Origin: Sphaerodactylus townsendi
Lineage: Eukaryota
Direction: 5' to 3'
Length of the DNA stretch: 64,000 nucleotides
Assembly (NCBI RefSeq): GCF_021028975.2
Contig: NC_059439.1
Location: 23,002,001-23,066,000, forward strand
Shown: positions 3,111 to 30,274 of the stretch, one piece after another
How positions within the stretch are numbered: position 1 is the stretch's first letter
Layout: each line of letters begins with the position of its first letter
Position numbers and translations under genes: made by a program
Notes under the pieces: model-generated
Told to the model about the DNA's origin: nothing
Seen by the model: only the letters and a program-made list of their open reading frames with translations
The model's database searches: none

Positions 3111-4038
3111 CTATTTCTTTAACATTTTCTGCATGGCTACATGGATTTCTTTGTTTTTCAGACTATAAATAATGGGATTCAGGAGTGGAGGCAAAATGGT
3201 GTACAACACAGCAGCTGTCACGTCTACTGGTACAGAAGACATGGATTTTGGTCTCATATAAGAAAACAAACCAGTAGAGACAAACAAGGAAAGCACAGTC
3301 AAGTGTGGGATGCAGGTAGAAAAGGCTTTAGACTTGGCCTTGGCTGATTTAATTTTCAGCACGTTTTGCAAAATGAACCCATAAGAAGTTAATATACCGA
3401 ACAAGCAAAATGAGCAAATAACAGCTCCTTCAACAACAAGAACCACAGCGTTGGCAGTTGTATCAGTGCAAGAAATCGTTAATAATTGGGGGATATCACA
3501 AAAATATTGTTCAATCTTAGAGCTGCAAAAATTTAACCTGAATGTGTTTGCAGTATTCACAGCAGCGTAGATTATGCTGCTGATCCAAGGTGCTGCGGCC
3601 ATTTGGATGCAAGTATTCCAGTTCATCAACACCGTGTATTGTAGAGGATGACAAATTGCTACATAGCGGTCATAAGCCATCACAGTCAGAAAGGTCAGCT
3701 CGACACCTGCACCAGTCAACACTAAGAACACTTGTGCGACACATCCAGGGAAAGAAATCAGTTTGTTTGTCCAGGAAATCGCCATGGATTTGGGGACAGT
3801 GGCAGAGATGTAGCAAGCATCTGATAAAGAGAGGTTGGCTAGGAAGAAATACATGGGATTGTGAAGGGACTGATTCTGGACTACAGTCAGCATCAAAAGG
3901 AAGTTCCCCACCAAGGCCGCTGAGTAAATGGAAAGAAATGTTACAAAGTGTAAAATCTGGAGCTCTGGGAGATCAGAAAATCCCAAGAGGAAGAAGGCTG
4001 TGACAGTTTGATTCCCCCTTCCTTCAGTGAGACGAACC
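3111..4038 (-). CDS. Olfactory receptor, family-14-like, copy 1 (main coding exon; 319 aa if spliced to 7258-7289)
   Basis: Motifs GN, LHNPMYFFLANLS, TVPKSM, MAYDRYVAICHPLQY, KAFSTCIPHL, PPLLNPIIYSLKN; NQT sequon; open frame 3111-4094. Confidence 0.95.
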
Positions 4039-4926
4039 CTTGTAGAAACAAAAGGAAACATGTCATTGAGGAATAAAACTAATGGAGGAACCATGTCTGG
4101 AGTTTAGAGCAAAGATATACGGACATAGATACAAATTAGGGTCTCTTACATTTGAAGTACATCTTCCTATCTGTACCATTAAGACCACAGTCTAAAATTA
4201 AGTGATGTTGGGGGTGGTGGAAAGTGTCATCAACCTGTAACTGATTTAAGGGTTTTTAGGACAAGAGACTAGCAGAGGTGTCATTACTTGCCTCTGTAAA
4301 GCAACTTTGGACTACCTTGTTGGTCTTTCATCTCAAATACTTGTTGGTATTTGTCTCCTTGTTAAGAGATACCTTTGCATTACAGCAGAGTGCACAGAGG
4401 CAAAACACAGCAGAGTTTAACCAGAAATGTGTGTGTGGGTGGAAAACAAAAGAAACTCAGAGCCAATTCATAATTTCTGTCTAAATAAGAGGAGCTTTTA
4501 TTAGTGAACTCCATTCTGTATAGAACAATGGAGAGATGGGTCCTATATTCTAATCTAACTAGGGGGATGGTGAGGGATGCCATCTGCATCTCTCTGCACA
4601 TATAGCGCAAGATTGAGGAATGTGTGCAAGAATGGTGATTTGAGTGTGAAGGAGAAGCAGGAAGGAAGGAAGTTCCCTGAGACTAGCAATCTACACATCA
4701 AAGGGATAATGTCGGAGCAGTAGAGAAAGGGTGCTCAGTGTCTTGACCTCCTCACCTGGTAGGCCCACATTGAATCAAACATTCCCTCCCTGGGCTTTAC
4801 TTAGGATTAGCTTCACATGCTTTCCCCCAGCATAATCCTTCATCACCTCAAGGACGGACTATTCAACCAAAAATATCAACTCTCAATTGGTAATTTGGCA
4901 TCATACCCAAGAAAGGTACACTACAC

Positions 4927-5232
4927 TTGTCAGTGCTATCAGTCACAGACCAGGAAAGGGATTTGGGCGTCTTAGTTGATAGTTCCATGGGAATGTCAAC
5001 TCCATACATGGCAGCTGTGAAAAAGGCAAACTCTATGCTGGGGATCATTAGGAAAGGAGTTGATAATAAAACTGCAAGGATTGTCATGCCCTTATATACA
5101 GCCGTGGTGTGACCGCACTTGGAGGACTGTGTTCAGTTCTGGTCGCCACATCTCAAAAAGGATATCAAAGAGATAGAAAACGTGCAAGGAAGGGCAACGA
5201 GGATGACTGAAGGATTGGAGCACCTTCCTTGT
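4927..5232 (+). mobile_element. CR1 LINE ORF2 fragment
   Basis: [12 protein letters not shown]...AAVKKANSMLGIIRKG...PLY motif. Confidence 0.85.
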
Positions 5233-5730
5233 CATGTTCTTACAAAAGCTGGCTATCTAAATGTATTGCTTGATCCCAAGTTAAGATGGTAACTACCGAG
5301 GCAAGAACTGACACACTCCCTCCCACCCTATCACCTGAGAGATTCAAGTCAGCTCTACATAAGATGTGTGCCTGTATGTGTTGCCGAACGCTCGATGAGA
5401 CCTTGGAACACATTTTTCTTGTCTGCCCCAAATTAATAGAACTTAGATCTAGTTTTTTTTTTCAAGAAGGTCCCAAGTATGGTTAGCCTGCTTTCATCTA
5501 ACGCCAGCATGAATTATCTTTTGAACAACTAGGACCCTAAGATGCTGGAAATAAAGACCAATTTTTAGTACAAATTGTGGAGCATCCCTCTGGGTGCCTC
5601 CCCCAGTCCAACTGAACAATGTGTGTATGTTCCTGACATTTGTTTAAATTATAAATGTTTTACTTTTCCTACTTGCTACACATTGTATCCATTTGATGCC
5701 TAATAAAGGTCTTTGTAATTGTAATTGTCT
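5233..5730 (+). mobile_element. RTE-X-like LINE 3' fragment
   Basis: CMCCRTLDETLEHIFLVCPK Cys/His motif; aataaaggtc followed by a (ttgtaa)n tail. Confidence 0.65.
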
Positions 5731-5746
5731 CTACTTCCTCTAGCTA

Positions 5747-6535
5747 TCTTAGTTGATAGTTCCATGGGAATGTCAACTCAATGCATGGCAGCTGTGAAAA
5801 AGGCAAACTCTATGCTGGGGATAATTAGGAAAGGAATTCAGAATAAAACTGCAAAGATTGTCATGCCCTTATATAAAGCAGTGGTGCGACTGCACTTGGA
5901 GTACTGTGTTCAGTTCTGGTCGCCTCATCTCAAAAAGGACATTGAAGAGATAGAAAAAGTGCAGAGAAGGGCAACAAGGGTGATTGAGGGACTGGAGCAC
6001 CTTCCTTATGAGGAGAGGCTGCAGCGTTTAGAACTCTTTAGTTTGGAGAGGAGACGTCTGAGGGGGGATATGATTGAAGTCTATAAAACTATGCATCGGG
6101 TAGAAAATGTTGACAGAGAGAAATTTTTCTCTCTTTCTCACAATACTAGAACCAGGGGGCATACATTAAAATGCTGGGGGGAAGAATTAGGACTAATAAA
6201 AGGAAACACTTCTTCACGCAGCGTGTGATTGGTGTTTGGAATATGCTGCCACAGGAGGTGGTGATGGCCACTAACCTGGATAGATTTAAAAGGGGCTTGG
6301 ATAGATTTATGGAGGAGAAGTCGATTTATGGCTCCCAATCTTGATCCTCTTTGATCTGAGATTGCAAATGCCTTAACAGTCCAGGTGCTCGGGAGCGACA
6401 GCCGCAGAAGGCCATTGCTTTTACATCCTGCATGTGAGCTCCCAAAGGCACCTGGTGGGCCACTGTGAGTAGCTGAGAGCTGGAGTAGATGGACTCTAGT
6501 CTGATCCAGCTGGCTTGTTCTTATGTTCTTATGTT
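5747..6535 (+). mobile_element. CR1 LINE 3' end
   Basis: ORF 5725-6228 [28 protein letters not shown]...LFSLERRRLRGDMIEVYK; (ttcttatg)n tail. Confidence 0.92.
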
Positions 6536-7257
6536 TTACTGATCAGTCCCCCTCTGTCACTAATGCAGAAGATAGTGCTTTTGTGCAATCACTTCCAACA
6601 CTACTGACCAGGGCCAATCCTGCTTAGATTAAAGGTTATTATAGGATTTCCAACAAAACACATCTTCCTATGTCTGCTTTTCAAAATAATGCATGCCAAA
6701 CCATTACATGACTGACTGACTGTTCAAAGAAGTTTACAAATGAAGAAAAAGATATGCCAATGGTACGGAGATTTATATCCAACCATCATCCAATTTTTAA
6801 TGTACAGTGGGTTTATTCAGTGTGTGTGTGTTTTGTTTGTTTTGGGGATATGATCAATGGTCATTAAGTGGATAGTTTATAAGTAACCAGAAATCAGGTG
6901 TGGAAACTTGATTCTCTACATTTTGTAGTTGCCTACCATGAGTTATAGCTGTTGATAGAATTAGCCTCTGTGATTGTGACTAACCATGAAGAAATCGACA
7001 GCTGCCTGCCACATTCAGTGGTTGGGAAATCCATATACTATGAGACAGTGTAACTATTACTTATACACACAATTGTGCCCCCATTCGAATTTCAAGTTAT
7101 TTAGACTTTCTTGTCAGCAAAGTGCCCTGTTCCCCTGATAAGTTTGGTGATTTTGTGATTCCCTTCCCACCATTTCGAGATGATGATACCATTATTGAAA
7201 CACAATAAAAATTTCAGTAGCAATTGTTTAAGTATCTTGATTATCTAAATTTAGTAC

Positions 7258-7289
7258 CTTGCATGCCTGGTGGATTCTGAGTCAACCAT
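7258..7289 (-). CDS. Predicted upstream coding exon of OR copy 1 (MVDSESTRHA-R, phase 2)
   Basis: ATG GTT GAC TCA GAA TCC ACC AGG CAT GCA AG|GTACTA; phase matches acceptor tttctacaag|G at 4039/4038; conserved in all four units. Confidence 0.7.
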
Positions 7290-7513
7290 TTGTCTGTGTT
7301 CAATACCAGAACGATGATTTTTCTGCCCTTCTGCTTGAAATCCTGTTGTACAGTTACAAACAAAATACTCAAAACAATTGCAAGCCTTCAAGAAGCAATG
7401 TTAAGTTCCTTGATGCTTTTCCCTTTGAGATGCTGCGCTGTTCCTGGAAGGAAGAAGAATGGGAGATCTCGAGGACCTTGATCCATCGTTGTCCTAATGT
7501 ATTTAGCAAGTGC

Positions 7514-7522
7514 TCCCTGGAG
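7514..7522. promoter_or_regulatory. Candidate O/E (Olf/EBF) site in the conserved OR upstream block (also 16747-16755, 24254-24262, 30498-30506)
   Basis: TCCCTGGAG fits YCCCNNGRR; invariant in four units, ~230 bp upstream of the predicted ATG. Confidence 0.4.
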
Positions 7523-7743
7523 TCTTTTGTACCCCAACGGCATAAATTAAATGTAACAAAGTAAAACTATTTCCTGGCATACAGACTTCTTTGGTTTTAT
7601 GAAATTATGGAAAAGACCATTAAGCAGACTTTTGCTGTTGCTTAGTGAAGAACTGATGCATTCTGGGGGTTGAATCCAGCCTGCTGTTCTGCTGGTGAAA
7701 AATGGCAGGAGTCCTCTTAATCAGGAAAATGGCAGGACTGTCA

Positions 7744-7863
7744 GTATACATTTTACTAGACTCCACTTCTCTCAAAGACTTGAATAAAGCTTTTTCTGTC
7801 TTTTTCACCATCCTAACACCTCTGGTCAATCCTCTCATGTACAGTCTGTGAAACAAAGATGTA
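7744..7863 (+). pseudogene. OR6/11-like gene relic (ECL3-TM7-helix 8)
   Basis: Translates VYILLDSTSLKDLNKAFSVFFTILTPLVNPLMYSL*NKDV. Confidence 0.85.
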
Positions 7864-9208
7864 CCCATCTGTAACACACATAAAAATGGGAATAGGTGGC
7901 AGAGATTAATTTTTCACCAAGCTCCTTGGAATAATAGACTAATTCAATAAAATAAGTGGATTAATTCATAACTTAAATTAGCCCCGTTAATTTGTTGCAG
8001 CAAAAAAGAACAATAACTTTAATTGAGCTTTTTTCAGCTAGAATCCTGTCAGAAAACTGAAGTGTTCGAAGACTCCTCTCTTCTTGTTAAAATGTGTTGA
8101 CCAATCATAAAACAAAACATTTATTCAACTTAGAAATTTTGTTAGAACATTTTGCTTTCCTTTTAAAATTCTCAGGAGTTTTACTGAAGCAAACGTGCTT
8201 CCTTATAGTCCTCAGATGGTATCTTCAGGATGTGTGAAAAATCATTAAAATTAATATGTATAACATATCTTAAATGTTAAATAAAATTACAATAATTCAG
8301 TAACAAAGTGAATCCAAAGACTGCCCTTCTAACAACACCAAAACATCAATTCGATTGCACATAACTTGTTATATGGATTGACCTGATGTGGTTCGGTCAG
8401 ATAAATGTTCTTTGGAGGTTCAAATACATAGACGCAAACACAAAAAGTAGTTATGAAAGAGCAAAAATGAACAAAGGTCACAAAGAATATGGTAGAAAAG
8501 TTGACTATGAATCTCTAGTCATGTTTGGTCATATAGTTTCTGCCAGAAAACAGTCGCTATACATTTAGGAACTCATATTATGGATGGTAACCAACTATCC
8601 TTAACTGGGTGCCAATTCATCGAATGTGTGCCAGTGCAAATCCAAAAAAATGAGTGTTGAATTCTTGGGGTGGGGGGGGGGGGGTAAGTGACCTGAATTT
8701 CCTAGGTTAGCCTTGTCAATTCTGGGAAGCTAAGCAGGGTTGGTCCTGCTCAGTATTTGTATTGGAGACCTTTACAGAATACCAAGGTCAGAATACTGGG
8801 GCAAACCACCTCTCATTGTCTCTTGTCTTGAAAACTCTGCTGAGTCTCCATAAGTCAGCTGTGACTTAACTGGGATAAACAGGAAAAAAGGGATTTTTGA
8901 AGCCTAACATCAGGCAATCAGCTCAGCCAATTGTCAAGGATATCTTGCATTGAGATTGACCACAGCTGATGTCTGGGGGAACTAAGCAAGTATACTTAGT
9001 GCAACTCCTAGCCAAACACCCATGGCACCTATTGCCTCACAGGAATGGACAACTAAACAGCAGCAGCTGAGAATGAAGAAGAGCAACTCCACATGTTGAA
9101 AGTCCATGTGATGAGTACTCTGAAAGGATGTCTCAGCAGATGTCTCTCTCCCCTTTGCCTATGTCTCTTTTTACCATCTGTACAGACAATGATTCAAGAA
9201 GAAGATAA

Positions 9209-9580
9209 TGTGGAGGACTCAACAGGGTGGAAATGCAGTGTGGGTTGGCTGCAGTGCCTTGCAGAGATCCTGCCACTCAACCATGGAGCTGCCATCCCCA
9301 CAGCTCAAGCCCACCTCCTGCACCATTTTGCATGTTCAGACAGCCCTCCTTTTGGTGTGTCTGCACCACTCCAAGGCACAATGTGACAGAGAGAGCTTGC
9401 CATATCTCCCCACGGTTTCCTAGAGCAGCTTGAACAGGCTGCTCTGGGCGATAAAAATACACAACCTTACTGGCACTTGTGACTATTTCCCTGCTGCCAT
9501 TGAATAAAGTCTAGTGTTCGAATTCCATGTTTGTCTCTGGCATTGGGTATTGAGGCCTGCCTCCACCTCTTCTGACCCAC
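9209..9580 (+). mobile_element. Solo-LTR-like insertion
   Basis: Starts TG, has TATA-like gataaaaat and aataaa followed by a GT-rich tract; absent from the homologous position of unit C. Confidence 0.35.
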
Positions 9581-11678
9581 CCACTCATGCCACATCCCCT
9601 CCAGCCCAGCACCTCCTCACACCTCTGTGAATTCTCACTGAGACTTCTCAGAAAGATTCCCTCTTTACACATGTGTAGCGGTTGGGTTGGGTTTGTGAGA
9701 GGCTCCTGCTGGGATGCCTTTTGTTAGTCTCCACAATGTCATTGGATTCCTCTTGGATTTAACTAAAATACATGGACATGGTTGCATCCCCTTGCCACTC
9801 ACATACTCTGCAAGCTTTTGTGTGCAGCTACATGGTGCATGGGCTGGGAGGGTGGTTCAGGGGGTGGGACTTGTGTGTCATTTCAGGGGGGTCACTGGGA
9901 TGAAAGGGGAGTGATGGTAGCAAAGAGCTCTAGTGTATGGTGCAGGTGATTTGGAAAAGGGCATGCCTACCAAAATTCAATCCTGGTATGTCTGCAGCCC
10001 ATCCTTTCCAGGTGGAAATAAACCCAGGAGCCGTGGTTCCAGCACCTTTCTATGGGATTCCTTACAATGGTGATATCAGAGCTTCAATGGAATGACAAAT
10101 GCCCAAAGGCATTCCTCCTTTGCAAGTATCTGGTTGATCCACTGGTTAGGGCTCTTTTTTTTTTTAGGATGAGGTGGGAGTGAGATCAAACCAAGCCTCT
10201 TACTTGTGTTTTATTAGCAATGGCACTATGATATGAATATTTCTCTGTGCAGTCTGAAGGGAGGGGTATGGCATTTAGAAACTGTGGCCACGTTGCCAGA
10301 CACTGATTGACTGGACCTGTCTTTGTAGCTTGTAGACTCTTTATTAATTGCAACCACATACAACTGTAGGGGTTGACTGCTGGAATTAAGGGACGTTTCC
10401 CCACTCAGCATGATCCCCCCTATGCCACGCGCTGCTCACAGCGCGCGGCATCCCTAGCACACTCCTGGGCGTCCCCATGACCTCATGCTGTGTGTGGGGT
10501 CATCAAAAGGCACCCATTGCAAGAGCGCCAGGGATGACATGCACTGAGGGGGCGCAACAGCGGAAACGTCGGGACGGCAGCGCTGTCACTGCCCCTCTCA
10601 TGGTGAGTGCCAGGGGACCCCACGCTACTCTTCTCAAGTACCGTAGGGCTTAAGGTAAGTGGGGAAAGGCCCATAGTTGAAACCTTCAAATTTTGGGTCT
10701 GCTTTGTTTTCATACAGACTCATATAGTTTATCTCAGCTTGCAATAGGGGGCTTCAGCGCTCAAATTGGTGTCTTCATACTGAAGCCAAAGTCCTTTCTC
10801 TGGGTTTTAACTGGGAGTCTTTACTAATGCTTACTGCTCCTGGTTATTTCACCAACTTAAAGCTAGACTATTTGAACCGGAATACCAATTTCTTTAAGTA
10901 AAGCACAAAGCTTTCCATTATTTTTTGGAATTACTTCCCAGAAATTCGACCCCGCTACTTACCTGGACCAACTGGTAAATTATAAACTTAGATGGCTAAC
11001 AACCTAAGCAAGATGTAACTCCTTTTCCCTCAGTTTTACTCCAAGGTTGTTTTTCTAATATCGCTCATCTTGAGCGACGCTGCCAGTTATGTCTCCATAT
11101 ACCAGATTCACTTGCTCATGTCTTTCTTCCCTGCCATAAACATAACAATCTTAGATCTGACCTGGTTGCATTCTTTCCTACAGGATTGGCATCTCTTCCA
11201 GACAAAATAAAAATAATTAAGTTACTGGATAATCCTGAGGTAAAAATATCGGAAGCTTTAGCAACATTCTTAATACGTGTTTTGCATGCTTTGTAATAAC
11301 GCTCTTTTACTGTAACTTTATTTAGTTTTTACTGTTTTTGCGTTTTTTTCTAATGCCTATTAAAGGTTTTTGAAATCTAATTGCAACCCCATAAAACTGT
11401 AGCGGTGGACGGTATATTCAAAAGAAAATAATAGAAGAGCCTTTTACATCAAACACTCAGAACAATATAACTCAACAAAGAAATTTTTCTGGAACAGATT
11501 TATCATAATTCATATAGATACAGCCATCAATAGCTATCGTTAATATAGATATATAAATTCTGTTACAATTATATTACATGTGGTAGAAATATCATGCCAA
11601 TGAGAATACATCAGTAGCCATAACAGCACTATGCACCTATTTACACTCGTATCAACTGGGTTCAGTTCAGTGGGAAGT

Positions 11679-12636
11679 TTAGCAAATCTTCAGGCAAAAT
11701 CCAGACCGTTTCTTTAACATTTTCTGCATGGCTACCTGGATTTCTTTGTTTTTCAGACTATAAATAATGGGATTCAGGAGTGGTGGCAAAATGGTGTACA
11801 GTACAGCAGCCGTCAGGTCTACTGGTGCAGAAGACATGGATTTTGGTCTCATATACGAAAACATAGAAGTAGAGAGAAACAAGGAAAGCACAGTCAAGTG
11901 TGGGATGCAGGTGGAAAAGGCTTTAGACCTGGCCTTGGCTGATTTAATTTTTAGCACGTTTTGCAAAATGAACCCATAAGAAGTTAATATACCGGAAAAG
12001 CAAAATGAGCAAATAACAGCTCCTTCAACAACAAGAACCACCGCATTGGCAGTTGTATCAGTGCAAGAAATCATTAATAATTGGGGGATATCACAAAAAT
12101 ATTGTTCAATCTTAGAGATGCAAAAATGTAACCTGAATGTGTTTGCAGTATTCATAGCAGCGTAGATTATGCTGCTGATCCAAGGTGCTGCGGCCATTTG
12201 GATGCAAGTATTCCAGTTCATCAACACTGTGTATTGTAGAGGATGACAAATTGCTACATAGCGGTCGTAAGCCATCACAGTGAGAAAGGTCAGCTCAACA
12301 CCTGCACCAGTCACCACTAAGAACACTTGCGCGACACATCCAGGGAGAGAAATCAGTTTGTTGTTCGTCCAGGAAATCGCCATGGATTTGGGGACAGTGG
12401 CAGAGATATAGCAAGCATCTGATAAAGAAAGGTTGGCTAGGAAGAAATACATGGGATTGTGAAGGGACTGATTCTGGACTACAGTCAGTATCAAAAGGAA
12501 GTTCCCCACCAAGGCTGCTGAATAAATGGAAAGGAATGTCACAAAGTGTAAAATCTGGAGCTCTGGGAGATCAGAAAATCCCAAGAGGGAGAAGGCTGTG
12601 ACAGTTTGATTCCCCCTTCCTTCAGTGAGACGAACC
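11679..12636 (-). CDS. Olfactory receptor, family-14-like, copy 2 (main coding exon; 329 aa if spliced to 16489-16520)
   Basis: All OR motifs intact. The ORF-track start at 12737 is a GTG inside a MITE; no in-frame ATG before PMYFF. Confidence 0.93.
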
Positions 12637-12725
12637 CTTGTAGAAAGAAAAGGAAACAGGTTAATGAGAAATAAAACTAATGGAAGAAATAAGTCTGGGC
12701 TTTGGAGCAAAAGCCTAGGGACTGA

Positions 12726-12865
12726 GGCCCCTTCCACTCACACAAAATAATGTATTTCAAACCACCTTCACAACTGTTTGCAAGTGGATTTTGCTATTCC
12801 GCACAGCTTCAAAGAGCACTGAAAGCAGTTTGAAAGTGCGTTATTCTGCATGTGCGGAATGAGCC
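12726..12865. mobile_element. Harbinger-type MITE, ~140-bp family (also 45020-45070 partial, 55335-55464, 61668-61808)
   Basis: TIRs ggccccttcc(g)ca / tgcggaatgagcc; the 55335 copy has a 3-bp TSD gaa. Confidence 0.8.
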
Positions 12866-12943
12866 ATAGATATAAAGCAGGGTCTCTCACAATTGAAGCA
12901 CATGTTTCCATCAGTACCATTGAGACCAGAGTCTAAAATTAAC

Positions 12944-12984
12944 TGGTGGTGGTGGTGGTGGTGGTGGTGGTGGTGGTGGTGGTG
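12944..12984. repeat. (TGG)n microsatellite
   Basis: Direct; expanded relative to the other units. Confidence 0.95.
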
Positions 12985-13196
12985 GAAAGATTTATCAACA
13001 TATAGCTGTTTTAAGGGTTTTCAGGACAAGAGACTAGCAGAGGTGGTTTGCCATTACCTGCCACTGCATAGCCACTTTGAACTTCCTTGTTGGTCTCCCA
13101 TCTCAAAGACTTGTTGGCATTTCTCTCCCTGTTAAGAGATACCTCTGCATTACAGCAGAGTGCACAGAGGCAAAACATGGCAGAGCTTAACCAGGA

Positions 13197-13197
<1 letters not shown>

Positions 13198-13246
<49 letters not shown>
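13198..13246. repeat. (TG)n microsatellite
   Basis: Direct. Confidence 0.95.
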
Positions 13247-13250
<4 letters not shown>

Positions 13251-13547
13251 CAAAAGAAGCTCAGAGACTATTCATAGCTTCTATCTAATAAGAGGAACCT
13301 TTATTAGTGAACACCATTTTCGATAGAAAAATGGAGTGATAGGTCCTCCATTCTAATCTAACTAGCTGGATGGTGAGGGATGGGAGATCCAACCCCTACA
13401 TGGGAGATCCATATACGATGAGACAGTGTAACTATTACTTTTACATACAATTGTGCTCCCATTTGAATTTCAACTTATTTAGGCTTTCTTGCCACCAACA
13501 TGCTCTGTTCCCTTGATAAGTTTGGTGACTTTTTGATTCCCTTCCCA

Positions 13548-16402: not shown

Positions 16403-16488
16403 GATTCCCTTCCCACCATTTTGAGATGATCATACTATAAAATTTCAGTAGCAATTATTTAAGTACTTTGAATATCTTATTTAAGTAC

Positions 16489-16520: not shown

Positions 16521-16972
16521 TGCTCTGTGTTCCATACCAGAAGGATGATTCCTCTGTCCTTCTGCTTGAAATGCTGTTGTGCAATTACAAACAAAACACT
16601 CAAACAATTGCAAGCCTTCAGGAAATAACAATGTAAAGTTCCTTGCTGCTTTTCCCTTTGAGATGCTGAGCTGTTCCGGGAAGGAGGAAGAATGGGAGAC
16701 CTCAAGGAGCTTGATCCATGGTTGTCCTAATGTATCTAGCAGGTGCTCCCTGGAGTCTTTTGTAACCCAGCAGCATAAATTAAAAGTAACGAAGTAAAAC
16801 TATTTCCTGGCATACAGACTTCTTTGGTTTTACGAAATTATGGAAAAGACCATTAAGCAGACTTTCTCTGTTGCTTAGTGAAGAACTGATGCATTCTGGG
16901 GGCTGGATCCAGCCTGCTGCCAATGTAATATTGCGGAAAATTTCTTCAGTCAGGAAAAAGACAGGACTGTCA

Positions 16973-17110
16973 GTGTACATCTTACCAGACTCCACTTCTC
17001 TTAAAGACTTGAAGAATGCTTTTTCTGTCTTTTACACCATCCTAACATTTCTGGTCAACACTCATATATATATATGTGAAACAAAGATATTAAAGACTCT
17101 CTTCAGAGAT
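16973..17110 (+). pseudogene. OR6/11-like TM7 relic, second copy
   Basis: VYILPDSTSLKDLKNAFSVFYTILTFLVNTHIY, then frameshifted *NKDIKDSLQR. Confidence 0.8.
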
Positions 17111-17402
17111 TTGAAATTATACTATTTGGCAGAGTTCAGGCATTGAAATAAAAAAGTAAGATGGCATTGTGCTTAAAACAGGAACCCAGAGAATTCTTGA
17201 AATAGTCAAAAACCAAGATCACAATTCAGAACACATTCACTAAGGATTAAACCTCATTTTGTTTTGTGGAACTAATATCAGAGCAAACATACTTAACAAT
17301 GTCCTGTGTGTTTGCCTTTACTACTTTTTGGTTTCTATAAGGAATGAATCAGATCCTAACAACTTTTCTGCTCAATATGTTATTATTGATTCTTACCATT
17401 TA

Positions 17403-19140: not shown

Positions 19141-19443
19141 CCTAAGTTGGCAAATATTAAAATTAAAATATTCTAATATGTTTTCTCTGGTTCCTGATGA
19201 AATGGATGCTTCATGCAGACTCCTTTTTTTAACTGGATAATTCTGATCTCACAACTTGTAAAATGGTAGCAAAATTTTAATTGGAAGTGATGTATAACCA
19301 GTAGCCTACACTCATGCCAGATATTTTGTATTTGAATACTGCTCTTATTATAAATTCTGTATTTTTGATATGATCTTATTTTAATTGTTTTATGCCAAAT
19401 AAAGACTAAAGAAAAAAACCAATGTTAAATAAAATTGCAATAA

Positions 19444-20124
19444 AACGCAGCCCTGGAATTACCCAGGGCTACTATTGCGGCAGTGAACAGGAGACCAAGA
19501 AAAGACTGGCTGCAAAGCAGCAGGACTGCCAGGCCAGTGGTCACATGACTGGGGCCGGTCATGTGCCAGGGGAGCCTGGGCGCACCTATATAACGTTGTG
19601 CCCGGCTGGCCACAGCCTCTTTCAAGGCCATCAGAGCCAGCAGACCCACCCTCCCTCCCTGTGTTATGAGTTGGATTGGGGGTATTTATTGTTGAGTGTT
19701 AATTTGTTTTTGTCACAGCTTGGATGGTTTTGGGCATAGGAGCACATCCTTTATGGGGAGGCCGAGCTTGTGTGCTGGACCTCCCCCCAGCTGGGGGCCT
19801 CAATAAGAGGTCTGGGGTGGGGTGGGCTCATGGTGCAGGCCATGGAGCCTTGCAAATGAGCCTGCTAACCCCAGCAGGAAGGGTTGTCACATAATGGGTA
19901 TGCGCTAAGGTGGCACCTAGTAACTTTCTGTCTCATCCCCCAGTAAGGATTGGGGATAATGCCGGGTTCAGCAGGCCGTACGCTTGCTGTCCACGGTCTG
20001 GGTTCAGCATTGGTGCTGCCCAGCTTTCTACACTGGTTTTAATAAACAGGCTGTGGCCAAAATTTATTCCAATGAAAACAGTGTCTGTCATCTTTGGAAG
20101 CGACCCTCTGCACATCAGCATGCA
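19444..20124 (+). mobile_element. LTR-like solo repeat (possibly a DIRS/Ngaro terminal repeat)
   Basis: cctatataa at ~19586; aataaacaggctgtggccaaaatttattcca near the end; absent at the unit B site (~8290). Confidence 0.5.
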
Positions 20125-21555
20125 ATTCAATAACAAAATGAATCCAAAGACTGCACTTGTAACAGCACCAAAACATCAGTTCGATTGCTTGTAGCTTTTA
20201 TTATGGATTGATTTGATGTGTTTTGGTCAGATAGGTCTTCTTCAGAGGTTTAAATACATAGACACAAACACAAACAGTAGTTAAGAACGAGCAAAAACAA
20301 AGGACACAAAGAATATGGTAGAAAAGTTGACTATGAATCTCTAGTCATGTGTAGGTCATATAATTACTGGCAGATAACAGTCGCTATACATTTAGGAACT
20401 CATATTATGAATGGTAACCAACTATTCTTAACTGGGTACAAATTCACAGAATGTGTGCCAGTGGAAATCTAAAAAAAAGAGTGCTAAATTCTGAGCGGGG
20501 GGATGGGGGGGGGTACCTGACCTTAATTTCCAATTCCTAGGCTAGCCTAGTCAATTCCTAGGCTAGCCTAGTCAATTAAGCTAAGCAGGGTTGGTCCTGC
20601 TCAGTATTTGTATGGTAGACCTCTAAGGAATATCGGGTCACAATACTGGGACCTCTAAGGAATACCGGGTCACAATACTGGGGCAATTGGTTTTCCTCCT
20701 GCTAGAAAGTGACCTACATGAAATCTACTTACTTGTCTCTAGTCTTGAAAACCCTGCTGAGTTTCCATAAGTCAGCTGTGAGTTGGCTGGGATAAACAGA
20801 AGAAAAAAAGGGGTTTTTGAAGCCACATACCAGGAAGTCAGTCAGAGATAACTCGGATTCAGACTGACCAAAGCTGAAAACTGGGACAACTAAGCAGCTA
20901 TGCTTAGTGCAACCTCTATCCAAACACCCATGGCACCTATTATCTCACAGCACTGACTAAGCAGCATCTGAGAATGGAGAAGAGCAACTCCAAACAGTGG
21001 AAGTCCATGTGATGAGTGCTCTGAAAGGGTATCTCAGCGGATGAAACCATCCCCCCCCATGTCTATGTCTCAGTTTACCAACAATTGCTGTGACAGCCCA
21101 AGAGATTGAGCTCCCCCCCCCCAAAAAAAAACTTTGAAAGATACATTAATCAAAACCAAAGAGTCTAAAGGAAGGGAATGCTGAAATATTAATACTGTGA
21201 TTTCTTTGTGAGTCATTCTACTTCTGCAACAAAATCACAGAATTACTCTTTATAAATTGTAACCACACAAACTGTAGGGGTAGACTGTATATTCAAAAGA
21301 AAATAATAGAAGAGCCTTATTCATCCAACACTCAGAACAATATTACCCAACATACAAATTTTTCTGGTACAGGAGATTTATCATGATTCATATAGATATA
21401 GCCATTGATAGCCATTGTCTGCATATATAAATTAGGTTAGAATTATATTATATGAGGTAAAAATATCATGCCAATTAGAATACATCAGTATCCAAAACAG
21501 CACAATGCAGCTATTTACACTAGTATCAACTGGGCTTAGTTCACTGGGAAGTTTA

Positions 21556-22510
21556 TCAAATGATCACGCAAAATCCAAACCGTTTCTTTAACATTTTCTG
21601 CATGGCTACATGGATTTCTTTGTTTTTCAGACTATAAATAATGGGATTCAGGAGTGGTGGCAAAATGGTGTACAATACAGCAGCCGTCAGGTCTACTGGT
21701 GCAGAAGACATGGATTTTGGTTTCATATAAGAAAACAAAGCAGTAGAGAGAAACAAGGAAAGCACAGTCAAGTGTGGGATGCAAGTGGAAAAGGCTTTAG
21801 ACCTGGCCTTGGCTGATTTAATTTTTAGCACGTTTTGCAAGATAAATGCATAAGAAGTTACAATACCGAAAAAGCAAAATGAGCAAATAACCACTGCTTC
21901 AATAACAAGAACCACCATATTGGCAGTTGTATCAGTGCAAGAAATCATTAATAATTGGGGGATGTCACAGAAATATTGTTCAATCTTAGAGCTGGAAAAA
22001 TGTAACCTGAATGTGTTTGCAGTATTCATAGAAGCACTGATTATGCTGCTGATCCAAGACGCTGCTGCCATTTGGATGCAAGTATTCCAGTTCATCAACA
22101 TTGTGTATTGTAGAGGATGACAAATTGCTACATAGCGGTCATAAGCCATCACAGCCAGAAAGGTCAGCTCGACACCTGCACAAGTCAACACTAAGAACAC
22201 TTGCGCGACACATCCAGGGAAAGAAATCAGTTTGTTGTTTGTCCAGGAAATCGCCATGGATTTGGGGACAGTGGCAGAGATATAGCAAGCATCTGATAAA
22301 GAGAGGTTGGCTAGGAAGAAATACATGGGATTGTGAAGAGACTGATTCTGGACTACAGTCAGCATCAGAAGGAAGTTCCCCACCAAGGCCGCTGAGTAAA
22401 TGGAAAGGAATGTCACAAAGTGTAAAATCTGGAGCTCTGGGAGATCAGAAAATCCCAGGAGGGAGAAGGCTGGGACAGTTTGATTCCCCCTTCCTTCAGT
22501 GAGACGAACC
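21556..22510 (-). CDS. Olfactory receptor, family-14-like, copy 3 (main coding exon; 328 aa if spliced to 23997-24028)
   Basis: All OR motifs present; open frame 21556-22566. Confidence 0.95.
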
Positions 22511-23996
22511 CTTGTAGAAAGAAAAGGAAACATGTCATTGAGGAATAAAACTAAGGAAGGAACCATGTCTGGAGTTTAGAGCAAAGATATATGGACATAG
22601 ATACAAATTAGGGTCTCTTACATTTGAAGTACATCTTCCTATCTGTACCATAAAGACCACAGTCTAAAATTAACTGATGATGGTGGTGGTGGAAAGTGTC
22701 ATCAACCTGTAGCTGATTTAAGGGTTTTTAGGACAAGAGATGAGCAGAGGTGTCGTTACTTGCCTCTGTAAAGCAACTTTGGACTTCCTTGTTGGTCTCT
22801 CATCTCAAATACTTGCTGGTATTTGTCTCCCTGTTAAGAGATACCTTTGCATTACAGCAGAGTGCACAGAGGCAAAACATGTCAGAGCTTAGCCAGGAAT
22901 GTGTGTGTATGGAAAACAAAAGAAGCTCGGAGGCAATTCATAGTTTCTATTTAATAAGAGGAGCCTTAATGAACTCCATTCTTGATAGAACAATGGAGAG
23001 ATAGGTCCACTTTCCTAATCTAACTAGCTGGATGGTGAGGGATGCCATCTGCATCTCCCTGCACATACAGTGCAAGATGGAGGAATGTGTGCAAGAATGG
23101 TGATTTGTGTGTGAAAAAGAAGCAGGAAGGAAGGGAGTTCCCTGAGGGTAGCAATCTACACATCAAAGGGATAACGTTAGAGCAGTGGAGAAAGGGTTCT
23201 TTCTCAGTGTCTTGACCTCCTCTGGCTATTTGATTTACTAATCAGTTCCCCCACCCCCATCACTGAGGCAGAAGACAGTGCACAGTCCTTCACTTCCAAC
23301 AATACTGACCAGGGCCAACCCTGCTTTCATTTATGGTTATTATAGGTTTTCCAACAAAACACAGCTTCCTGTGGTTTTCAAAATAATGTGTGCCAAACCA
23401 TTACAAGACTGACTGTTCAAAGAAGCTTGAAAATTTAAAAAAATGTATGCCAATTGTACTGAGATTTATATCCAACCATGATCCAATTTTTATTGTACAA
23501 TGGGTCTACTCTGTGTGTTTTGGAAATATGATCAATGGTCTAAGGATATACCGTGATAAGTATCCAAAAATCAGGCGTGGAAAATTTTCTTTCCCTATTA
23601 TTTGGACTTCTGGAATTTAGATGATACATATTGTAAGTGTCTGCCATAGGTTATTGATGCCAGACATTGATGCCAGACATTGTAAGTGTCTGCCATAGGT
23701 TATAACTGTTGATAGAATTAGCCTCTGTGATTGTAACTAATCATGAAGAAATCTACAGCTGGTAGGGAAATCTATATACTATGAGACAGTATAACTATTG
23801 CTTAAAAATACAATTGTGCTCCCATTCTAATTTCAAGTTATTTACGCTTTCTTTCCACTTAAGTGCCCTGTTCCCCTGATAAGTCAGGTGACTTTTGATT
23901 CCCTTCCCACCGTTTTGAGATGATGATACCATTATTGAAACAATAAAATCTCAGCAGCAATTTTTTAAAATTATCTTGAATATCTTATTTAAGTAC

Positions 23997-24028
23997 CTTG
24001 CATCACTGGTGCATTCTGAGTCAACCAT
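23997..24028 (-). CDS. Predicted upstream coding exon of OR copy 3 (MVDSECTSDA-R)
   Basis: gcaATGG; GCA AG|GTACTT; phase 2 matches acceptor at 22511/22510. Confidence 0.72.
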
Positions 24029-25220
24029 TGCTCTGTGTTCAATGTCAGAAGGACGATTTTTCCGCCCTTCTGCTTGAAATGCTGTTGTACAGTTACAAAC
24101 ACAACACTCAGACAATTGCAAGCCTCCAAGAAGCAATGTAAAATGTCTTGCTTCTTTTTTTCCTGTGAGATGCTGCACTGTTCCTGGAAGGAAGAAGAAT
24201 GGGAGACCTCAAGGAGCTTGATCCATGGTTGTCTTAATGAATTGAGCAAATGCTCCCTGGAGTCTTTTGTAACCCAGTAGCATAAATTAAAAGTAACAAA
24301 GTAAAACTATTTCCTGGTATGCAGGCTTCTTTGGTTTTATGGAGAACACAATTAAGCAGTCTTTTGCTGTTGCTCAGTGGAGAACTGATGCATTCTGTAT
24401 GCTGGATCCAGCCTGCTGTTCTTCTGAGGAAAAATAGCAACGGTCCTCTTTAGTCAGGAAAATGACAGGACTGTTACAAGATGGCTCTTTTTGCCCTGGC
24501 GGCTAGGAAAATGCGAGCAGAGTATTTAAAGCACTCTTTGAACTGATGATTCAATGAGCTTGTGGTCCACTTAGTTTAGTATGAAGAAGTTGTTAAAACA
24601 CCTGACATGGAAAGTATTTGATGGGGCAATTTAATTTGGATATAGTGAATATAAATAATTTATATTTTAACCGAAAGATAAATTTAGTATTTTAATCTGA
24701 ATGTTTTAACTGTATGTATTTTTGGATGTTATAGCCAATGGCTCAAACAATAAATACTACTTGACTTGACAGGACAGTCAAAAACCAAAATCATATAATT
24801 CAGAACACATTCACTTAGAATTAAGCCTCATTTTGCTTTGTGGAGCTAATATATCATTGCCAACATTCTTAGGAATGCACTGCGTACATTTTGGTTTCTA
24901 AAAGCAATGAATCAAATCCTAACAGCCTTTCTTCTCAATATTTTATTATTGATTCTTACGATTTAATCTAATTTACCTGCCTATAGCACACATAAAAATG
25001 GGAATAGGTGGCAGAGATTAATTTTTCATCAAGCTCTTTGGAGAAATAGGGTAATTCTGTAAAAAAAGTGGGCTAATTAATAATTTGAATTAGCCATGTT
25101 AATTTGTTGCAGCAAAAAAGAACAATAACTTTAATTAAGCTTTTCTAAGCTAGAATCCCCTTTGTCAGAAAAGTGAAGTGTCCTAAGACTCCTTTCTTCT
25201 TGTTATAATATGTTGATCAA

Positions 25221-25877
25221 ATCCTGGCCAGGATTTGTTTTAATCGAGATGAACTGGACTATACATCCCAGGGATGCTCCATCCTCCACACAACCCAGCG
25301 GTGGGTTAAAATCGAAGCCAAACTTAATGAGTTAGGCATTTCCTTGGATGACCTGCTAATGCTAACAGAGCAGGAGGTCTATGGGGCTAACAAGAAGAGG
25401 TTTTTTGACAGAGAGTTTCAACAGATGCTAGAGAGGAACCTGTACTCTCCTGGTTCGGGCCGGTGGCGTAGAGCAATCACATATGGCTAGGTGTAAATGC
25501 CTGCGCTTCTTCCTTTAGCCTTGGACAAGGCCACCTTGCAGAATCCCACATAAAAGAAGAGGAAATGCCCGTGTGGCATGGGTTCTCAATCAAACAAGTA
25601 TCTCATATGCTGTTGAATTGTCCTTTTGAGATAGGTAGGAAGAAGCGCATAATCCCCTTCCTGCATGGAAGTTGAAGGGCATTACAGATACCAAGCAGAA
25701 GGTTCATATCCATCTTTTAAACAGCCACAACTACGAGCTGTTGGAAGCAGTGGCTAAATATTTAAATGGTGTTATTTTAACTCGTCAGAAGTTGTAAAGT
25801 TGTAAAGGCTGTTATTATCTTGCTAAGTTAATCTTAAACTATTTATATGCCATTAAAGGTATTCGAAATCGAAATCG
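25221..25877 (+). mobile_element. RTE-X-like LINE 3' fragment
   Basis: attaaaggtatt(cgaaat)n tail; 14-bp TSD aatatgttgatcaa at 25207-25220 and 25878-25891; empty site at ~8090. Confidence 0.75.
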
Positions 25878-26386
25878 AATATGTTGATCAATCATAAAAC
25901 AAAAACCCCATTCAACTTAGAAATTTTGTTAGAACATGTTGCTTTCATTTTAAAATTCTCAGGAGTTTTACTCAAGCAAACATGCTTCCTAATAGTTCTC
26001 GGATGGTTTCTTAAGGATGTGTGAAAAATTGGACTTTTAGTTTGGCCGTAGCTTCAGAAGGACGTAGTTAACTCACAGAGACTTCAATCCCCAAACATCT
26101 TCTGATCCTAAATGTTTGCATCACTATTTTGACCCCATACCGGGGGGGGGGGGAGGGAACAGAATAGAAAGCAGAGAAGACAAAACCCCACCCTTATGTC
26201 TTGCTTCCCTGCCATAAACATAATAATCTTAAATCTGACCTGGTTGCCTTATTTCTTACAGGACTGGCATCTCTTCCAGACAAAATAAAAACGATTAAGT
26301 TACTAGATAATCCTGAGGTAGAAATATCTGAAGCTGTAGCAACATTCTTAATACGTGTTTTGCATGCTTTGTAATAATGTTCTTTC

Positions 26387-27190
26387 GTGGGCGGATGGGG
26401 AGAGCTTGCTCCTGGGCCAAAGATAACACACACACATACAATTGTGGAATAAAATTGGGCTGCAGCCCGTTTTATTGCAAATCAGAAGCTAGGGTGAGCA
26501 GAAGGGATCACATCAGAGCTGTGGGCTAGCACCTTTGCTGGCCCACAAAAAACCATCCCCAATCCCTATTGAGGCATGGGACAGGGAGTTAGTGGGTGCC
26601 ACCTGGGCGCAAGCCCTATTCGAGACACCCCCTTCCTGCTGGGGGTAGCAGGCTCGATTGCATAGCCTTCACGGCTTGTGCCATGAGACCCACCCCACCC
26701 CAAGCCTCTTACAGAGGCTCCCAACCGTGGAGAAATCCGGCTCGCAGGCTCGGTTTTCTCCCCAAAGGATGTGATTCCCTGTCCTAAACCTGCCAACGAG
26801 CTGACCTATCAGCTCCCACCCCCCTCAAGCCTCCTGCCAGCCCAGTAGTGCATGCCTCACTGCATGGAGCCACAGATCCATTCCCCAATCTGACAGATGA
26901 ACCCCGTCTGACTGAAAGAGGGCCAGCTGTAGGTGGGAGATGTCCGGATGCGTGATGACGTCCCCGCCAAGTTCCAGCACAACCCGGGAAGCTGCTTTCT
27001 CCACTTTGCCCCATGCCTGGTTAACTTTGCCCGGATGTTCAGCACCCCTTCACAACAGCAGCTGCAGCAGGCGACACCAGAAAAGTTTTGTCGTGGGCAG
27101 ACGATGATGCAACTCACGAAGGTCAGCGGCCATCCCTAAAGACAGCTCCACACTCTTCAGAGCCGGCAAATCATTTTTGCCCAAACCCAA
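26387..27190 (-). mobile_element. LTR-like solo repeat related to 19444-20124
   Basis: Minus strand reads aataaaacgggctgcagcccaattttattcca...tgtgttatctttgg. Confidence 0.5.
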
Positions 27191-27817
27191 CTTACAAATT
27201 TTTCTGGTACAGGAGATTCATCATAATTCATATAGATATAGCCATTTATAGCCATCGTTAACGTAGATATATAAATTATGTTACAATTACATTATACATG
27301 GTAGATATATGATGCCAATGAGAATACATCAGTAGCCTTAAGAACACAATGAAGCTATTTATTTAACCCTGAGGCAGAAATATCTGAAGCTGTAGAAACA
27401 TTCTTAATACGTGTTTTGCATGCTTTGTAATAACGTCCTTTTACTGTAACTTTATTTAGTTTTAACTGTTTCTGGTTTTTTTCTAATGCTTATTAAAGGT
27501 TTCTGAAATTTAATTGCAACCACATACAACGTTAGGAGTGGACAGTATATTCAAAAGAAAATGTTAGAAGAGCCTTATACATCAAACACTCAGAACAATA
27601 TTACCCAACATACAAATTTTTCTGGTACAGGAGATTTATCGTAATTCATATAGATATAACCATTTATAGCCATCGTTAACATAGATATATAAATTCTGTT
27701 ACAATTATATTATACATGGTGGAAATATGATGCCAATGAGAATACATCAGTAGCCATAAGAACACAATGCAGCTATTTACACTAGTATCAACTGGGTTCA
27801 GTTCAGTGGGAAGTTTA

Positions 27818-28817
27818 TCAAATCTTCAGGCAAAATCCAGACCATTTCTTTAACATTTTCTGCATGGCTACATGGATTTCTTTGTTTTTCAGGGGCTACT
27901 AAAACCAATAGTGGATTCAGGGACATTTGTGGCAAAATGGTTAATAGCCAATACAACGGCCCGTCAGGGTCTACCGATACTAGGCGACATGGAGTTTTGG
28001 GTCCCTCATATAACAAAACTATACCAGAAGTACTTAAGAGAGAGAAACAAGAGGAAAGCTACAGTAGTCAGGAGTGTGGGATGCAGGTTGGAAAAAGGGA
28101 AACTTTGACCTGGCCTTAGCTGATTTAATTTTTAGCACGTTTTGCAAGATGAACCCGTAAGAAGTTAATATACTGAAAAAGAAAAATGAGCAAACAACAA
28201 CTGTTTCAATAACAAGACCCACTACTATGGCAGTTGTATCAGTGCAAGAAATCATTAATAATTGGGGGATGTCACAAAAATATTGATCAATCTTAGAGCT
28301 GCAAAAATGTAACCTGAATGTGTTTGCAGTGTGCATGGCAGCATGGATCATGCTGCTGATCCAAGACGCTGCTGCCATTTTGATGCAAGTATTCCCGTTC
28401 ATCAACACCGTGTATTGTAGAGGATGACAAATTGCTACATAGCGGTCATAAGCCATCACAGTCAGAAAGGTCAGTTCAACATCTGCACCTGTCATCACTA
28501 GGAACACTTGCGCGACACATCCAGGGAAAGAAATCAGTTTGTTGTTTGTCCAGGAAATCGCCATGGATTTAGGGACAGTGGCAGAGATATAGCAAGCATC
28601 TGATAAAGAAAGATTGGCTAGGAAGAAATACATGGGATTGTGAAGGGACTGATTCTGGACTACAGTCAGCATCAGAAGGAAGTTCCCCACCAAGGCCGCT
28701 GAGTAAATGGAAAGGAATGTCACGAAGTGTAAAATCTGGAGCTCTGGGAGATCAGAAAATCCCAAGAGGGAGAAGGCTGTGACAGTTTGATTCCCCCTTC
28801 CTTCAGTGAGACGAACC
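27818..28817 (-). pseudogene. Olfactory receptor, family-14-like, copy 4; frame broken in TM6-TM7 (pseudogene or assembly error)
   Basis: Intact to KSAKARSK, then dense small insertions over ~27890-28110; homology resumes at KNKEI(H)VAMQKMLKK. Confidence 0.75.
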
Positions 28818-30242
28818 CTTGTAGAAAGAGAAGAAAACATATCATTGAGGAATAAAACTAATGGCTGGACTATGTCTGGGCTTTGGAACAAAAGCCTAGG
28901 GACATAGATACAAAGCAGGGTCTGTCACAATTGAAGCACATGTTCCCATCAGTACCATTGAGACCAGCATCTAAAAGTAACTGATGTTGTGGGTGGTGGA
29001 AAGTATCATCAACCTGTAACTGATTTAAGGGTTTTCAGGACAAGAGACTAGCAGGGGTGGTTTGCCATTACCTGCCATTGCAAAGCAACTTGGGACTTCC
29101 CTGTTGGTCTGTCATCTCAATTGGTATTTTTCTCCCTGTTAAGAGGCACCTTTGCATTACAGCAGAGTGCGCAGAGGCAAAACACAGCAGAGCTTACCCA
29201 GGAATGTTTGTGTGTGTGTGAAAAACAAAAGAAGCTAAGAGACAATTCATAGCTTCTGTCTAAGAAGAGGAGCCTTTATTAGTGAACTCCTTTCTCGATA
29301 GAACAGTGGAGAGACAGGTCCTCTATTCTAATGTAGTTAGCTAGATGATGAGGGACGCTGTCTGCATCTCTCCTCACACATAGTGCAAGATGGAGGAGTG
29401 TGTGCAACAATGGTGATGTGTGTGAAGGAAAAGCAGGAAGAAAGGAAGGAAGTTCCCTGACAGTAGCAATCTACACATCAGAGGGATAATGTTAGAGCAG
29501 TAGAGAAAGTGTTCTCAGTGTCTTGACCTTCTAGCTACCTGACTGACTGATCAGTCCCACCCCACCCCACCCCACTGAGACAGAAGACTTCCAATAATAG
29601 TGACCAGGGCCAACCCTGCTTTGTTTTAAGGTTATTATAGGATTTCCAACAAAACACACTTTCCTACGTCTGCTTTTCAGAATAATGCATGACAAGCCAT
29701 TATATAACTGTCTATCTGTTCAAAGAAGCTTAAAAATAAAGAATAATGTATGGCAATTGTACTGAGATTTTTATCCAACCATGATTCAATTTTTATTGTA
29801 CAGTGTGTGTTTTGGGAATGTGATCAATGGTCATTAAGGATATGTATAACCTGATAAAAGTAACCAAAAATTAGGTGTGGAAAATTTTCTTTCCCTATTG
29901 TTTTGGCTTCTGGAATTTAGATACATATTGGAAGTGCCTACCATAGGTTACAGCTGTTGATAGAATTAGCCTCTGTGATTGTATAGGGAAATCTGTATAC
30001 TATGGAGACAAGATTAGTAGCCAACATGTGGCTTAAAAACTTTTCTAATTGTGTTCCCCAGTATCTAATTTCAGGATTATTGGCACAGGAAGCTTTCTTT
30101 CCAGCTAACTGCCCTGTTCCTCTAATAAGTTTGGTGACTTTTGATTCCCTTCCCACCATTTTGAGATAATGATACCATTATTGAAACACAATAAAATTTC
30201 AGTAGCAATTATTTAAGTATCTTGATTATCTTATTTAAGTAC

Positions 30243-30274
30243 CTTGCATCCCTGGTGGATTCTGATTCAACCAT
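30243..30274 (-). CDS. Predicted upstream coding exon of OR copy 4 (MVESESTRDA-R)
   Basis: gcaATGG; GCA AG|GTACTT; phase 2 matches acceptor at 28818/28817. Confidence 0.68.

Follow-up and report, generated by a model that had tools for sequence, protein, structure and literature searches.

The olfactory receptor array and its canonical start position

The window analyzed here, that is, the whole stretch of 64,000 nucleotides (nt) from the gecko Sphaerodactylus townsendi (contig NC_059439.1, positions 23,002,001 to 23,066,000), harbors four olfactory receptor (OR) genes arranged in tandem on the minus strand, which correspond to the long open reading frames (ORFs) at 3111-4094, 11679-12737, 21556-22566 and 28034-28891. 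The question addressed in this work is where the translation of these genes, hereafter copies 1 to 4, begins. On the basis of protein similarity and motif content, all four are class II, family-14-like OR genes: the matches of copy 3 exon 2 in a protein search were gecko proteins named OR 14C36-like and 14A16-like, the best of them being from S. townsendi, and the Pfam domains PF13853 (7tm_4) and PF00001 (7tm_1) are precomputed on the OR14-like matches. The translations of copies 1-3 contain the NxT sequon and the motifs MAYDRYVAICxPL, KAFSTCxxHL and NPxIY, while in copy 4 the C-terminal OR signature motifs have been lost through a frameshift.

The main coding exon of copy 1 (3111..4038, minus strand, as for all the coordinates of these genes) is composed of 1 nt finishing a split Arg codon, 308 codons and the stop, and its body is intact. 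The same is true for the bodies of copy 2 (11679..12636), whose main exon is exon 2 of the RefSeq model XP_048372541.1, and of copy 3 (21556..22510), whose main exon is the last exon of XP_048372542.1. The main exon of copy 4 runs from 28817 to a premature stop at 28034, its frame being shifted by a 5-nt insertion near 28098-28102, and copy 4 is a pseudogene as a consequence of this insertion. Two further paralogues, cm1 and cm2, lie just outside the window; cm2 (L005:20111-20968) has an in-frame stop (TSI*MAAAS) and is also a pseudogene. Together with the neighboring paralogue P0003 (also referred to as c0), these genes make up the seven array copies compared in this work.

The feature that sets most of these genes apart is the codon found at the canonical start position. 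Copies 1-4 all read R-V-R-L-T-E-G-R-G-N-Q-T ahead of the first transmembrane segment, and the usual initiator is AGG in the four of them as well as in cm1 and cm2; it is ATG in P0003 and in the geckos Paroedura, Gekko and Eublepharis, and ATT in Heteronotia. The six genes with AGG form a clade within the species in which, apart from the two pseudogenes, four bodies are still open over 308-318 codons and keep every OR motif. The ratio of non-synonymous to synonymous divergence (dN/dS) calculated for the pairs of these four bodies ranges from 0.25 to 0.44 (Fisher p from 2e-5 to 2e-3), with a synonymous divergence (dS) of 0.10-0.15. Since AGG is common to all six copies, the mutation should predate their divergence; and since the bodies appear to have been under purifying selection after the loss of the ATG, they would have stayed functional, which implies that another start must exist.

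The sequence located immediately upstream of the lost ATG has the appearance of a 3' splice site. In all four copies it reads AATGAC-(A/C)TG-TTTCCTTTT-(G/C)TTTCTACAAG, and the proposed splice point falls between TTTCTACAAG and GGTTCGTCTC, so that the first base of exon 2 is 4038, 12636, 22510 and 28817 in copies 1 to 4, respectively. The AATGAC motif, about 25 nt from the AG, fits a branch point. Both donor and acceptor were assessed by comparison with the consensus and by cross-species conservation. The initial annotation of this DNA had reported that no ATG stands at the usual position before the NQT sequon and that a common pyrimidine tract ends in an AAG/G acceptor, and both observations hold in four copies out of four, each of which reads EGRGNQT with AGG in place of the usual ATG. 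It had also expressed a caveat about the acceptor being AAG rather than YAG; the bases are indeed those, while the concern is eased by the retention of AAG in four of the five genera compared (CAAG in S. townsendi and Eublepharis, AAAG in Heteronotia and Gekko, with CAG in Paroedura only).

The putative upstream exon and the competing starts

A block of 32 nt, ATGGTTGA(C/A)TCAGAAT...GCAAG followed by GTACT, lies upstream of the main exon in all four copies, at exactly the coordinates that had been assigned to it by the initial annotation. It occupies positions 7258..7289 in copy 1 (MVDSESTRHA plus AG, donor GTACTA), 16489..16520 in copy 2 (MVDSESNSDA plus AG, coincident with exon 1 of XP_048372541.1), 23997..24028 in copy 3 (MVDSECTSDA plus AG, where RefSeq carries the open frame up to 24082) and 30243..30274 in copy 4 (MVESESTRDA plus AG, with a stop directly upstream of the ATG in frame). 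The phase-2 arrangement of donor and acceptor claimed at the same time also stands: the 32 nt plus one G give MVDSE...-R-VRLTEGRGNQT in frame, and the predicted two-exon products of copies 1, 2 and 3 are 319, 329 and 328 amino acids (aa) long. The ATG, the 32-nt length and the GT are kept in seven of the seven array copies, and the Kozak context of this ATG is good, the +4 position being G in every copy and the -3 position being G in copies 2-4.

In our opinion, it is reasonably probable that the translation start of these copies is supplied by this short upstream exon, and that their coding sequence (CDS) is thus divided between two exons. This reading requires that the exon be transcribed, that splicing take place at these very sites and that initiation occur at the exon ATG, all of which we infer from the sequence.

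The putative introns are of the GT..AG type and measure 3219 nt in copy 1 (4039..7257, the last ~32 nt being AATGAC, the pyrimidine tract and AAG), 3852 nt in copy 2 (12637..16488), 1486 nt in copy 3 (22511..23996) and 1425 nt in copy 4. The lengths of 1.4-3.9 kb given previously are therefore correct, whereas the many independent transposable element insertions mentioned with them are overstated: copies 3 and 4 have collinear introns, and relative to these copy 1 has a single insertion of ~1.8 kb and copy 2 a single one of ~2.85 kb. The latter (~12723-15577) includes an antisense ORF of 249 aa on the plus strand (14707-15456), for which a Pfam search returned no match; the intron of copy 2 also contains the microsatellites (TGG)14 at 12944-12985 and (TG)24 at 13198-13246. 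Right after the donor, the S. townsendi copies exhibit a tandem duplication of ~22 nt, CAAG(G/A)TACTTAAATAA (7230-7257, minus strand, and equivalents), whose unit 1 retains the GT of the proposed donor; unit 2 (CAAGATAC) has lost its GT and aligns with the Heteronotia and Eublepharis donor.

The existing RefSeq models were then set beside this arrangement. The locus of the top match, on CM037628.2 (GCA_021028975.2), is 100% identical to window positions 26520..1679 over 24.8 kb. The model of copy 2, XP_048372541.1 (P0001, 329 aa), spans 16520..11679, has the N-terminus MVDSESNSDA-RVRLTEGRGNQT and is identical to the two-exon model proposed here. That of copy 3, XP_048372542.1 (P0122, 367 aa), which like XP_048372541.1 is named olfactory receptor 14C36-like, shares its donor and acceptor, extends the frame upstream and has one exon more, while for copy 1 RefSeq gives a single-exon protein of 327 aa (P0121) that starts at an ATG in the intron. 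The idea of a split start is thus already partly public, in the form of an inconsistent computed annotation. When residues 1-40 of P0001 were searched against a set of 5.8 billion proteins, only S. townsendi models were matched.

The 367-aa model raises the possibility of an N-terminus longer than the one proposed, beginning either as in XP_048372542.1 or, in copy 2, at an additional in-frame ATG located five codons above the exon ATG (MEHRA-MVDSE). The frame above the MVDSE ATG is in fact open in copies 1-3, but it is closed by the stop in copy 4, and the first exon of XP_048372542.1 (MAINGYIYMNYDESPVPEKF, 27196..27255, minus strand) falls inside an element that lies 30-800 nt past the stop codon of every OR copy. 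Similar copies of this element are found at 27605-27673, 21347-21415, 11481-11537 and 2890-2949, and also in the orthologues of four other gecko genera. Since the element follows the stop codon in all the copies and orthologues, it is probably a conserved 3' untranslated region (UTR) element, belonging to the 3'UTR of the upstream pseudogene, copy 4, rather than a true 5' exon. Two residues (AA) of the model cannot, moreover, be placed on canonical splice sites. The 367-aa protein looks like a chimera with copy 4, and we consider a longer N-terminus very improbable.

A different source for the start might be a 44-nt block, ATG...(C/A)A(G/A)/GTAA(T/C)G, located ~290 nt above the acceptor and also in phase 2 (22760..22803 in copy 3 and 13058-13101 in copy 2, minus strand). 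This block is open and in frame in copies 1-4, c0 and cm2, a status that is itself a weak point for the 32-nt exon, and its donor is nearer to the consensus, being CAG/GTAATG in copies 2, 4, c0 and cm2. Nevertheless, its ATG and GT are embedded in old repeat-like intronic sequence with a counterpart at this point of the intron in Gekko and Paroedura. Both of these have GC at the donor position, the GT being specific to S. townsendi, and Gekko has ATA in place of the ATG; the intact paralogue cm1 has lost the entire region. The block is neither adjoined by promoter-like conservation nor preceded by a good acceptor, and no RefSeq model makes use of it. In the light of these data, we think that there is very little chance that the start derives from it.

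Comparison with other geckos

The loci compared with the window were those of Heteronotia binoei (L002), Paroedura picta (L003), Gekko japonicus (L006) and Eublepharis macularius (L007 and L008), together with the S. townsendi paralogue loci next to the window (L004 and L005). Conservation across Heteronotia, Paroedura, Gekko and Eublepharis extends over the ~45 nt with which the intron ends (AATGAC, pyrimidine tract and AG) and over the first 18-19 nt after the acceptor; at that distance from the same acceptor, the sequence ATG-G-N-Q-T is found in Paroedura, Gekko, Eublepharis and P0003. The 5' exon is homologous in all the genera compared and lies at the 3' end of a conserved block of ~450 nt; in Paroedura, Gekko, Eublepharis and P0003 it is a plain 5'UTR exon. 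The alignments indicate that the ancestral gene is an ordinary OR, in which a non-coding exon close to the promoter is separated by an intron from the coding exon, the acceptor lying immediately ahead of the ATG.

The block upstream of the 5' exon contains two motifs, TTTAATTTA and ACTCCAGGGAGCA, which are ~20 nt apart and are conserved from Sphaerodactylus to Eublepharis, Paroedura and Gekko included. In copy 3 they occupy 24251..24291 (minus strand), ~220 nt 5' of the exon ATG, and the same pair is found at 7511-7551, 16744-16784 and 30495-30535 in copies 1, 2 and 4. We take TTTAATTTA to be homeodomain-like and ACTCCAGGGAGCA to be O/E-like, that is, features of OR promoters, and the ~450-nt block directly upstream of the 5' exon is a candidate OR promoter. 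A conserved pyrimidine tract followed by CAG/GAA, about 150 nt above the exon ATG, could be an alternative acceptor.

The conservation of the acceptor region also bears on the simplest alternative, according to which the CDS consists of a single exon: transcripts would start in the intron, or retain it, and an ATG located in the pyrimidine tract (MFPF(V/L)STRVRLTEGRGNQT) would initiate translation, the upstream block being a non-coding 5' exon or not used at all. This ATG is in frame in cm1 and in copies 1, 3 and 4, where it lies 17 codons ahead of the Asn; farther up in the intron, copies 1 and 3 contain another in-frame ATG (MVPPLV..), and RefSeq applies a model of this kind to P0002 (322 aa) and a still longer intronic start to copy 1 (P0121). 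On the other hand, copy 2, whose body is intact, has CTG at this position and no in-frame ATG in the 34 open codons upstream; a 1-nt indel puts the tract ATG out of frame in c0 and cm2, and the other geckos, whose tract reads ACACATTT, do not have it. A codon that is absent or thrown out of frame by such an indel suggests that the tract behaves as non-coding sequence. In addition, gecko genera have in common a conserved 3' splice site made up of the tract, the branch-point-like motif and the AG, and the tract ATG would therefore normally be spliced out. Hence, an intronic start appears unlikely to us.

Returning to the start in the 32-nt exon, the comparison permits a possible course of events to be outlined. 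The starting state would have been a short 5' exon beside the promoter, an intron, and an acceptor 18-19 nt above the start ATG. In one S. townsendi clade this ATG would have changed to AGG; the 5' exon would already have held an ATG which, after removal of the intron, was in frame (32 nt plus 1 nt) and which would have taken over initiation, adding ~19 residues (MVDSES...-RVRLTEGRG) ahead of the N-glycosylation sequon. The paralogue P0003 holds both ATGs, the canonical one and that of the exon, which suggests that the in-frame upstream ATG is probably the older feature and that the loss of the canonical one was for this reason tolerable.

The initial annotation had extended a start in the upstream exon to a whole reptile subfamily. 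This remains the best-supported reading for one S. townsendi clade, although it does not apply to the subfamily at large, since Paroedura, Gekko, Eublepharis and P0003 keep the canonical ATG. As far as the alignments indicate, the split CDS is a derived state of that clade, with a parallel in Heteronotia. Indeed, Heteronotia binoei appears to have lost the canonical ATG (ATT) independently of S. townsendi (AGG). In this species an ATG is present at the homologous position of the exon, with 45 coding nt to the donor, and the acceptor AG lies 1 nt later than in S. townsendi; the junction has phases 0/0 where the S. townsendi copies have 2/2, and the reading frame is preserved. The Heteronotia 5' exon (L002:10040-10056) has two overlapping donors, CCAAG/GTACGT and GGTAC/GTAAGT, the first of which is the only one that keeps the upstream ATG in frame, and an out-of-frame ATG is found 14 nt ahead of the in-frame one. 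A protein of a second sphaerodactylid, Euleptes europaea (P0005), contains MLSDAVERIDA-VRFNEEMGNQT.

On these grounds, we advance, tentatively and as somewhat less than an even bet, the broader proposal that geckos have relocated the start to the promoter-proximal 5' exon on no fewer than two independent occasions, once in Sphaerodactylus (ATG to AGG) and once in Heteronotia (ATG to ATT). Each relocation would have made use of an upstream ATG that was old, in frame and situated at the same position of the exon, and the frame would have been held by compensation between the 1-nt shift of the acceptor AG and the coding length of exon 1, which is 32 nt in Sphaerodactylus and 45 nt in Heteronotia.

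Constraint on the exon, expression and relation to known split genes

Several points weigh against a start located in the upstream exon. Among the paralogues, invariant columns amount to 78% in the 32-nt block, the corresponding figures being 67% for the upstream 340 nt and 72% for the 53 nt that immediately precede the ATG; all seven variable sites of the block (7/7) change an amino acid; and the chance that ATG, GT and AG would all have remained intact under neutrality is ~0.06. As the block is no better conserved than its flanks, the resemblance among paralogues is, by itself, what recent duplication would produce. The private branch of copy 2 has three synonymous and four non-synonymous changes, too few to show constraint. 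The donor, AAG/GTACT(T/A), does not have the consensus A at +4 and G at +5. A check of the orthologues in four other genera found the acceptor and the exon in each of them, with a variable donor position and the ATG shared with Heteronotia only. Most orthologues that have the canonical start are without the ATG of the exon: Paroedura has ACG in its place, Gekko has a deletion there, and of the Eublepharis copies one has CTG and another has the ATG with a stop after it, so that the exon peptide does not appear to be old coding sequence. Upstream AUGs may precede the exon ATG. The RefSeq models are inconsistent among copies (a single exon for copy 1 and 367 aa for copy 3) and, being computed and favoring in-frame solutions, do not represent independent proof. 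Lastly, three RNA runs mapped over 21301-27300 gave approximately zero depth on the OR exons and on the 5' exon, a result that gives no verdict on splicing, the tissue being unrecorded and the species label unlike that of the DNA runs.

The figures given above for the block and its flanks also settle an earlier argument based on the conservation among the four copies, which does not exceed the neutral expectation; paralogue conservation was accordingly rejected as a sign of selection on the 32-nt exon.

Some of these data would be expected if the in-frame ATG were a coincidence, that is, if the genes of the AGG clade were untranslated, dying, or poorly translated, with initiation farther downstream or at a codon other than AUG, and the 5' exon were only 5'UTR. 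Two of the six members of the clade are already pseudogenes (copy 4 by a frameshift and cm2 by a stop), the private changes of cm1 give an omega of ~0.8, the persistence of ATG, GT and AG departs only marginally from the neutral expectation, and no expression was seen in the RNA runs. However, this idea is hardly reconciled with pairwise dN/dS values significantly below 1 after the common loss of the ATG, with the four open bodies and their complete set of OR motifs, or with the independent Heteronotia parallel. For this reason we judge it quite unlikely.

The arrangement that we propose for the gecko genes has a counterpart in mammals. The initial annotation had stated that a minority of mammalian ORs have a split CDS, in agreement with Barnes et al. 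2020 (BMC Genomics 21:196, PMC7055050), who described split-CDS ORs the first class of which has no conserved initiator ATG in the main exon and recovers it in an adjacent upstream exon. The mammalian introns range from 0.55 to 22.6 kb, and the share of ORs with an in-frame upstream ATG is 13.6% in human and 21.5% in mouse (PMC7055050). The likeness of the gecko copies to this first class concerns several features: the whole seven-transmembrane body lies in the main exon, where a conserved initiator ATG is absent; a short upstream exon gives an in-frame ATG; the part interrupted by the intron is the extracellular N-terminus, the gecko introns (1.4-3.9 kb) being inside the mammalian size range; and such loci are otherwise called pseudogenes or given wrong starts. 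By analogy, the gecko copies would be a reptilian example of the split-CDS ORs of Barnes et al., an arrangement already known in mammals. There are also differences: the mammalian set required RNA-seq junctions or expression, whereas the gecko (squamate) case is based on comparative sequence data, and the initiator Met is conserved across an order in mammals, whereas in geckos it is conserved in the array of one species and in one parallel lineage. An ordinary vertebrate OR, having one or more non-coding 5' exons and an acceptor just before a single coding exon, corresponds to the state of Paroedura, Gekko, Eublepharis and P0003; in copies 1-4, by contrast, the canonical ATG is AGG, so that the upstream ATG would no longer be optional.

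A search of the literature found no paper describing split-CDS ORs of this type in squamates. Multi-exon OR genes were reportedly described in cichlids by Azzouzi et al. in 2014 (cited in PMC10869828), in a lineage and in OR families that differ from those of the gecko case.

If shown, squamate split-CDS ORs would extend the findings of Barnes et al. 2020 beyond mammals, and their route of origin would be the appearance of an in-frame upstream ATG first and the loss of the canonical ATG afterwards. There are also consequences for gene counts. Large surveys of non-mammalian ORs, such as that of Policarpo et al. 2024 (PMC10869828), mine single-exon ORFs, and this kind of mining would either leave copy 2 without a start or assign copies 1 and 3 a false one within the intron, which is what RefSeq itself has done with copy 1. 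If, in addition, the double relocation in geckos were true, the in-frame upstream ATGs of OR 5' exons would constitute a standing reservoir repeatedly making split-CDS ORs outside mammals, and squamate OR counts based on single ORFs would misclassify whole tandem clades. The biological effect would be modest, as the receptor body stays the same and the difference is limited to a short extracellular extension of the N-terminus.

As to the remaining features of the window, the reads of the three RNA runs in 21301-27300 were confined to repeats, at 23.1-23.3 kb and 24.3-25.9 kb. The indexed run X1 consists of genomic DNA, because the introns are covered and no intron joints are present. The high-copy repeats at 25100-25900 and 23100-23300 are very deep in the DNA run and collect from tens to hundreds of reads per RNA run, and their consistent differences from the window suggest that the repeats between copies 3 and 4 belong to an expressed transposon family. 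Runs of N are found at 46767-46921 and 47029-47206. Finally, three more intact ORs are located at 33404-34351 (plus strand), 51507-52460 and 58172-59131 (both minus strand); all of them have ordinary ATG starts, and they share only ~39-41% identity with the OR14-like copies.

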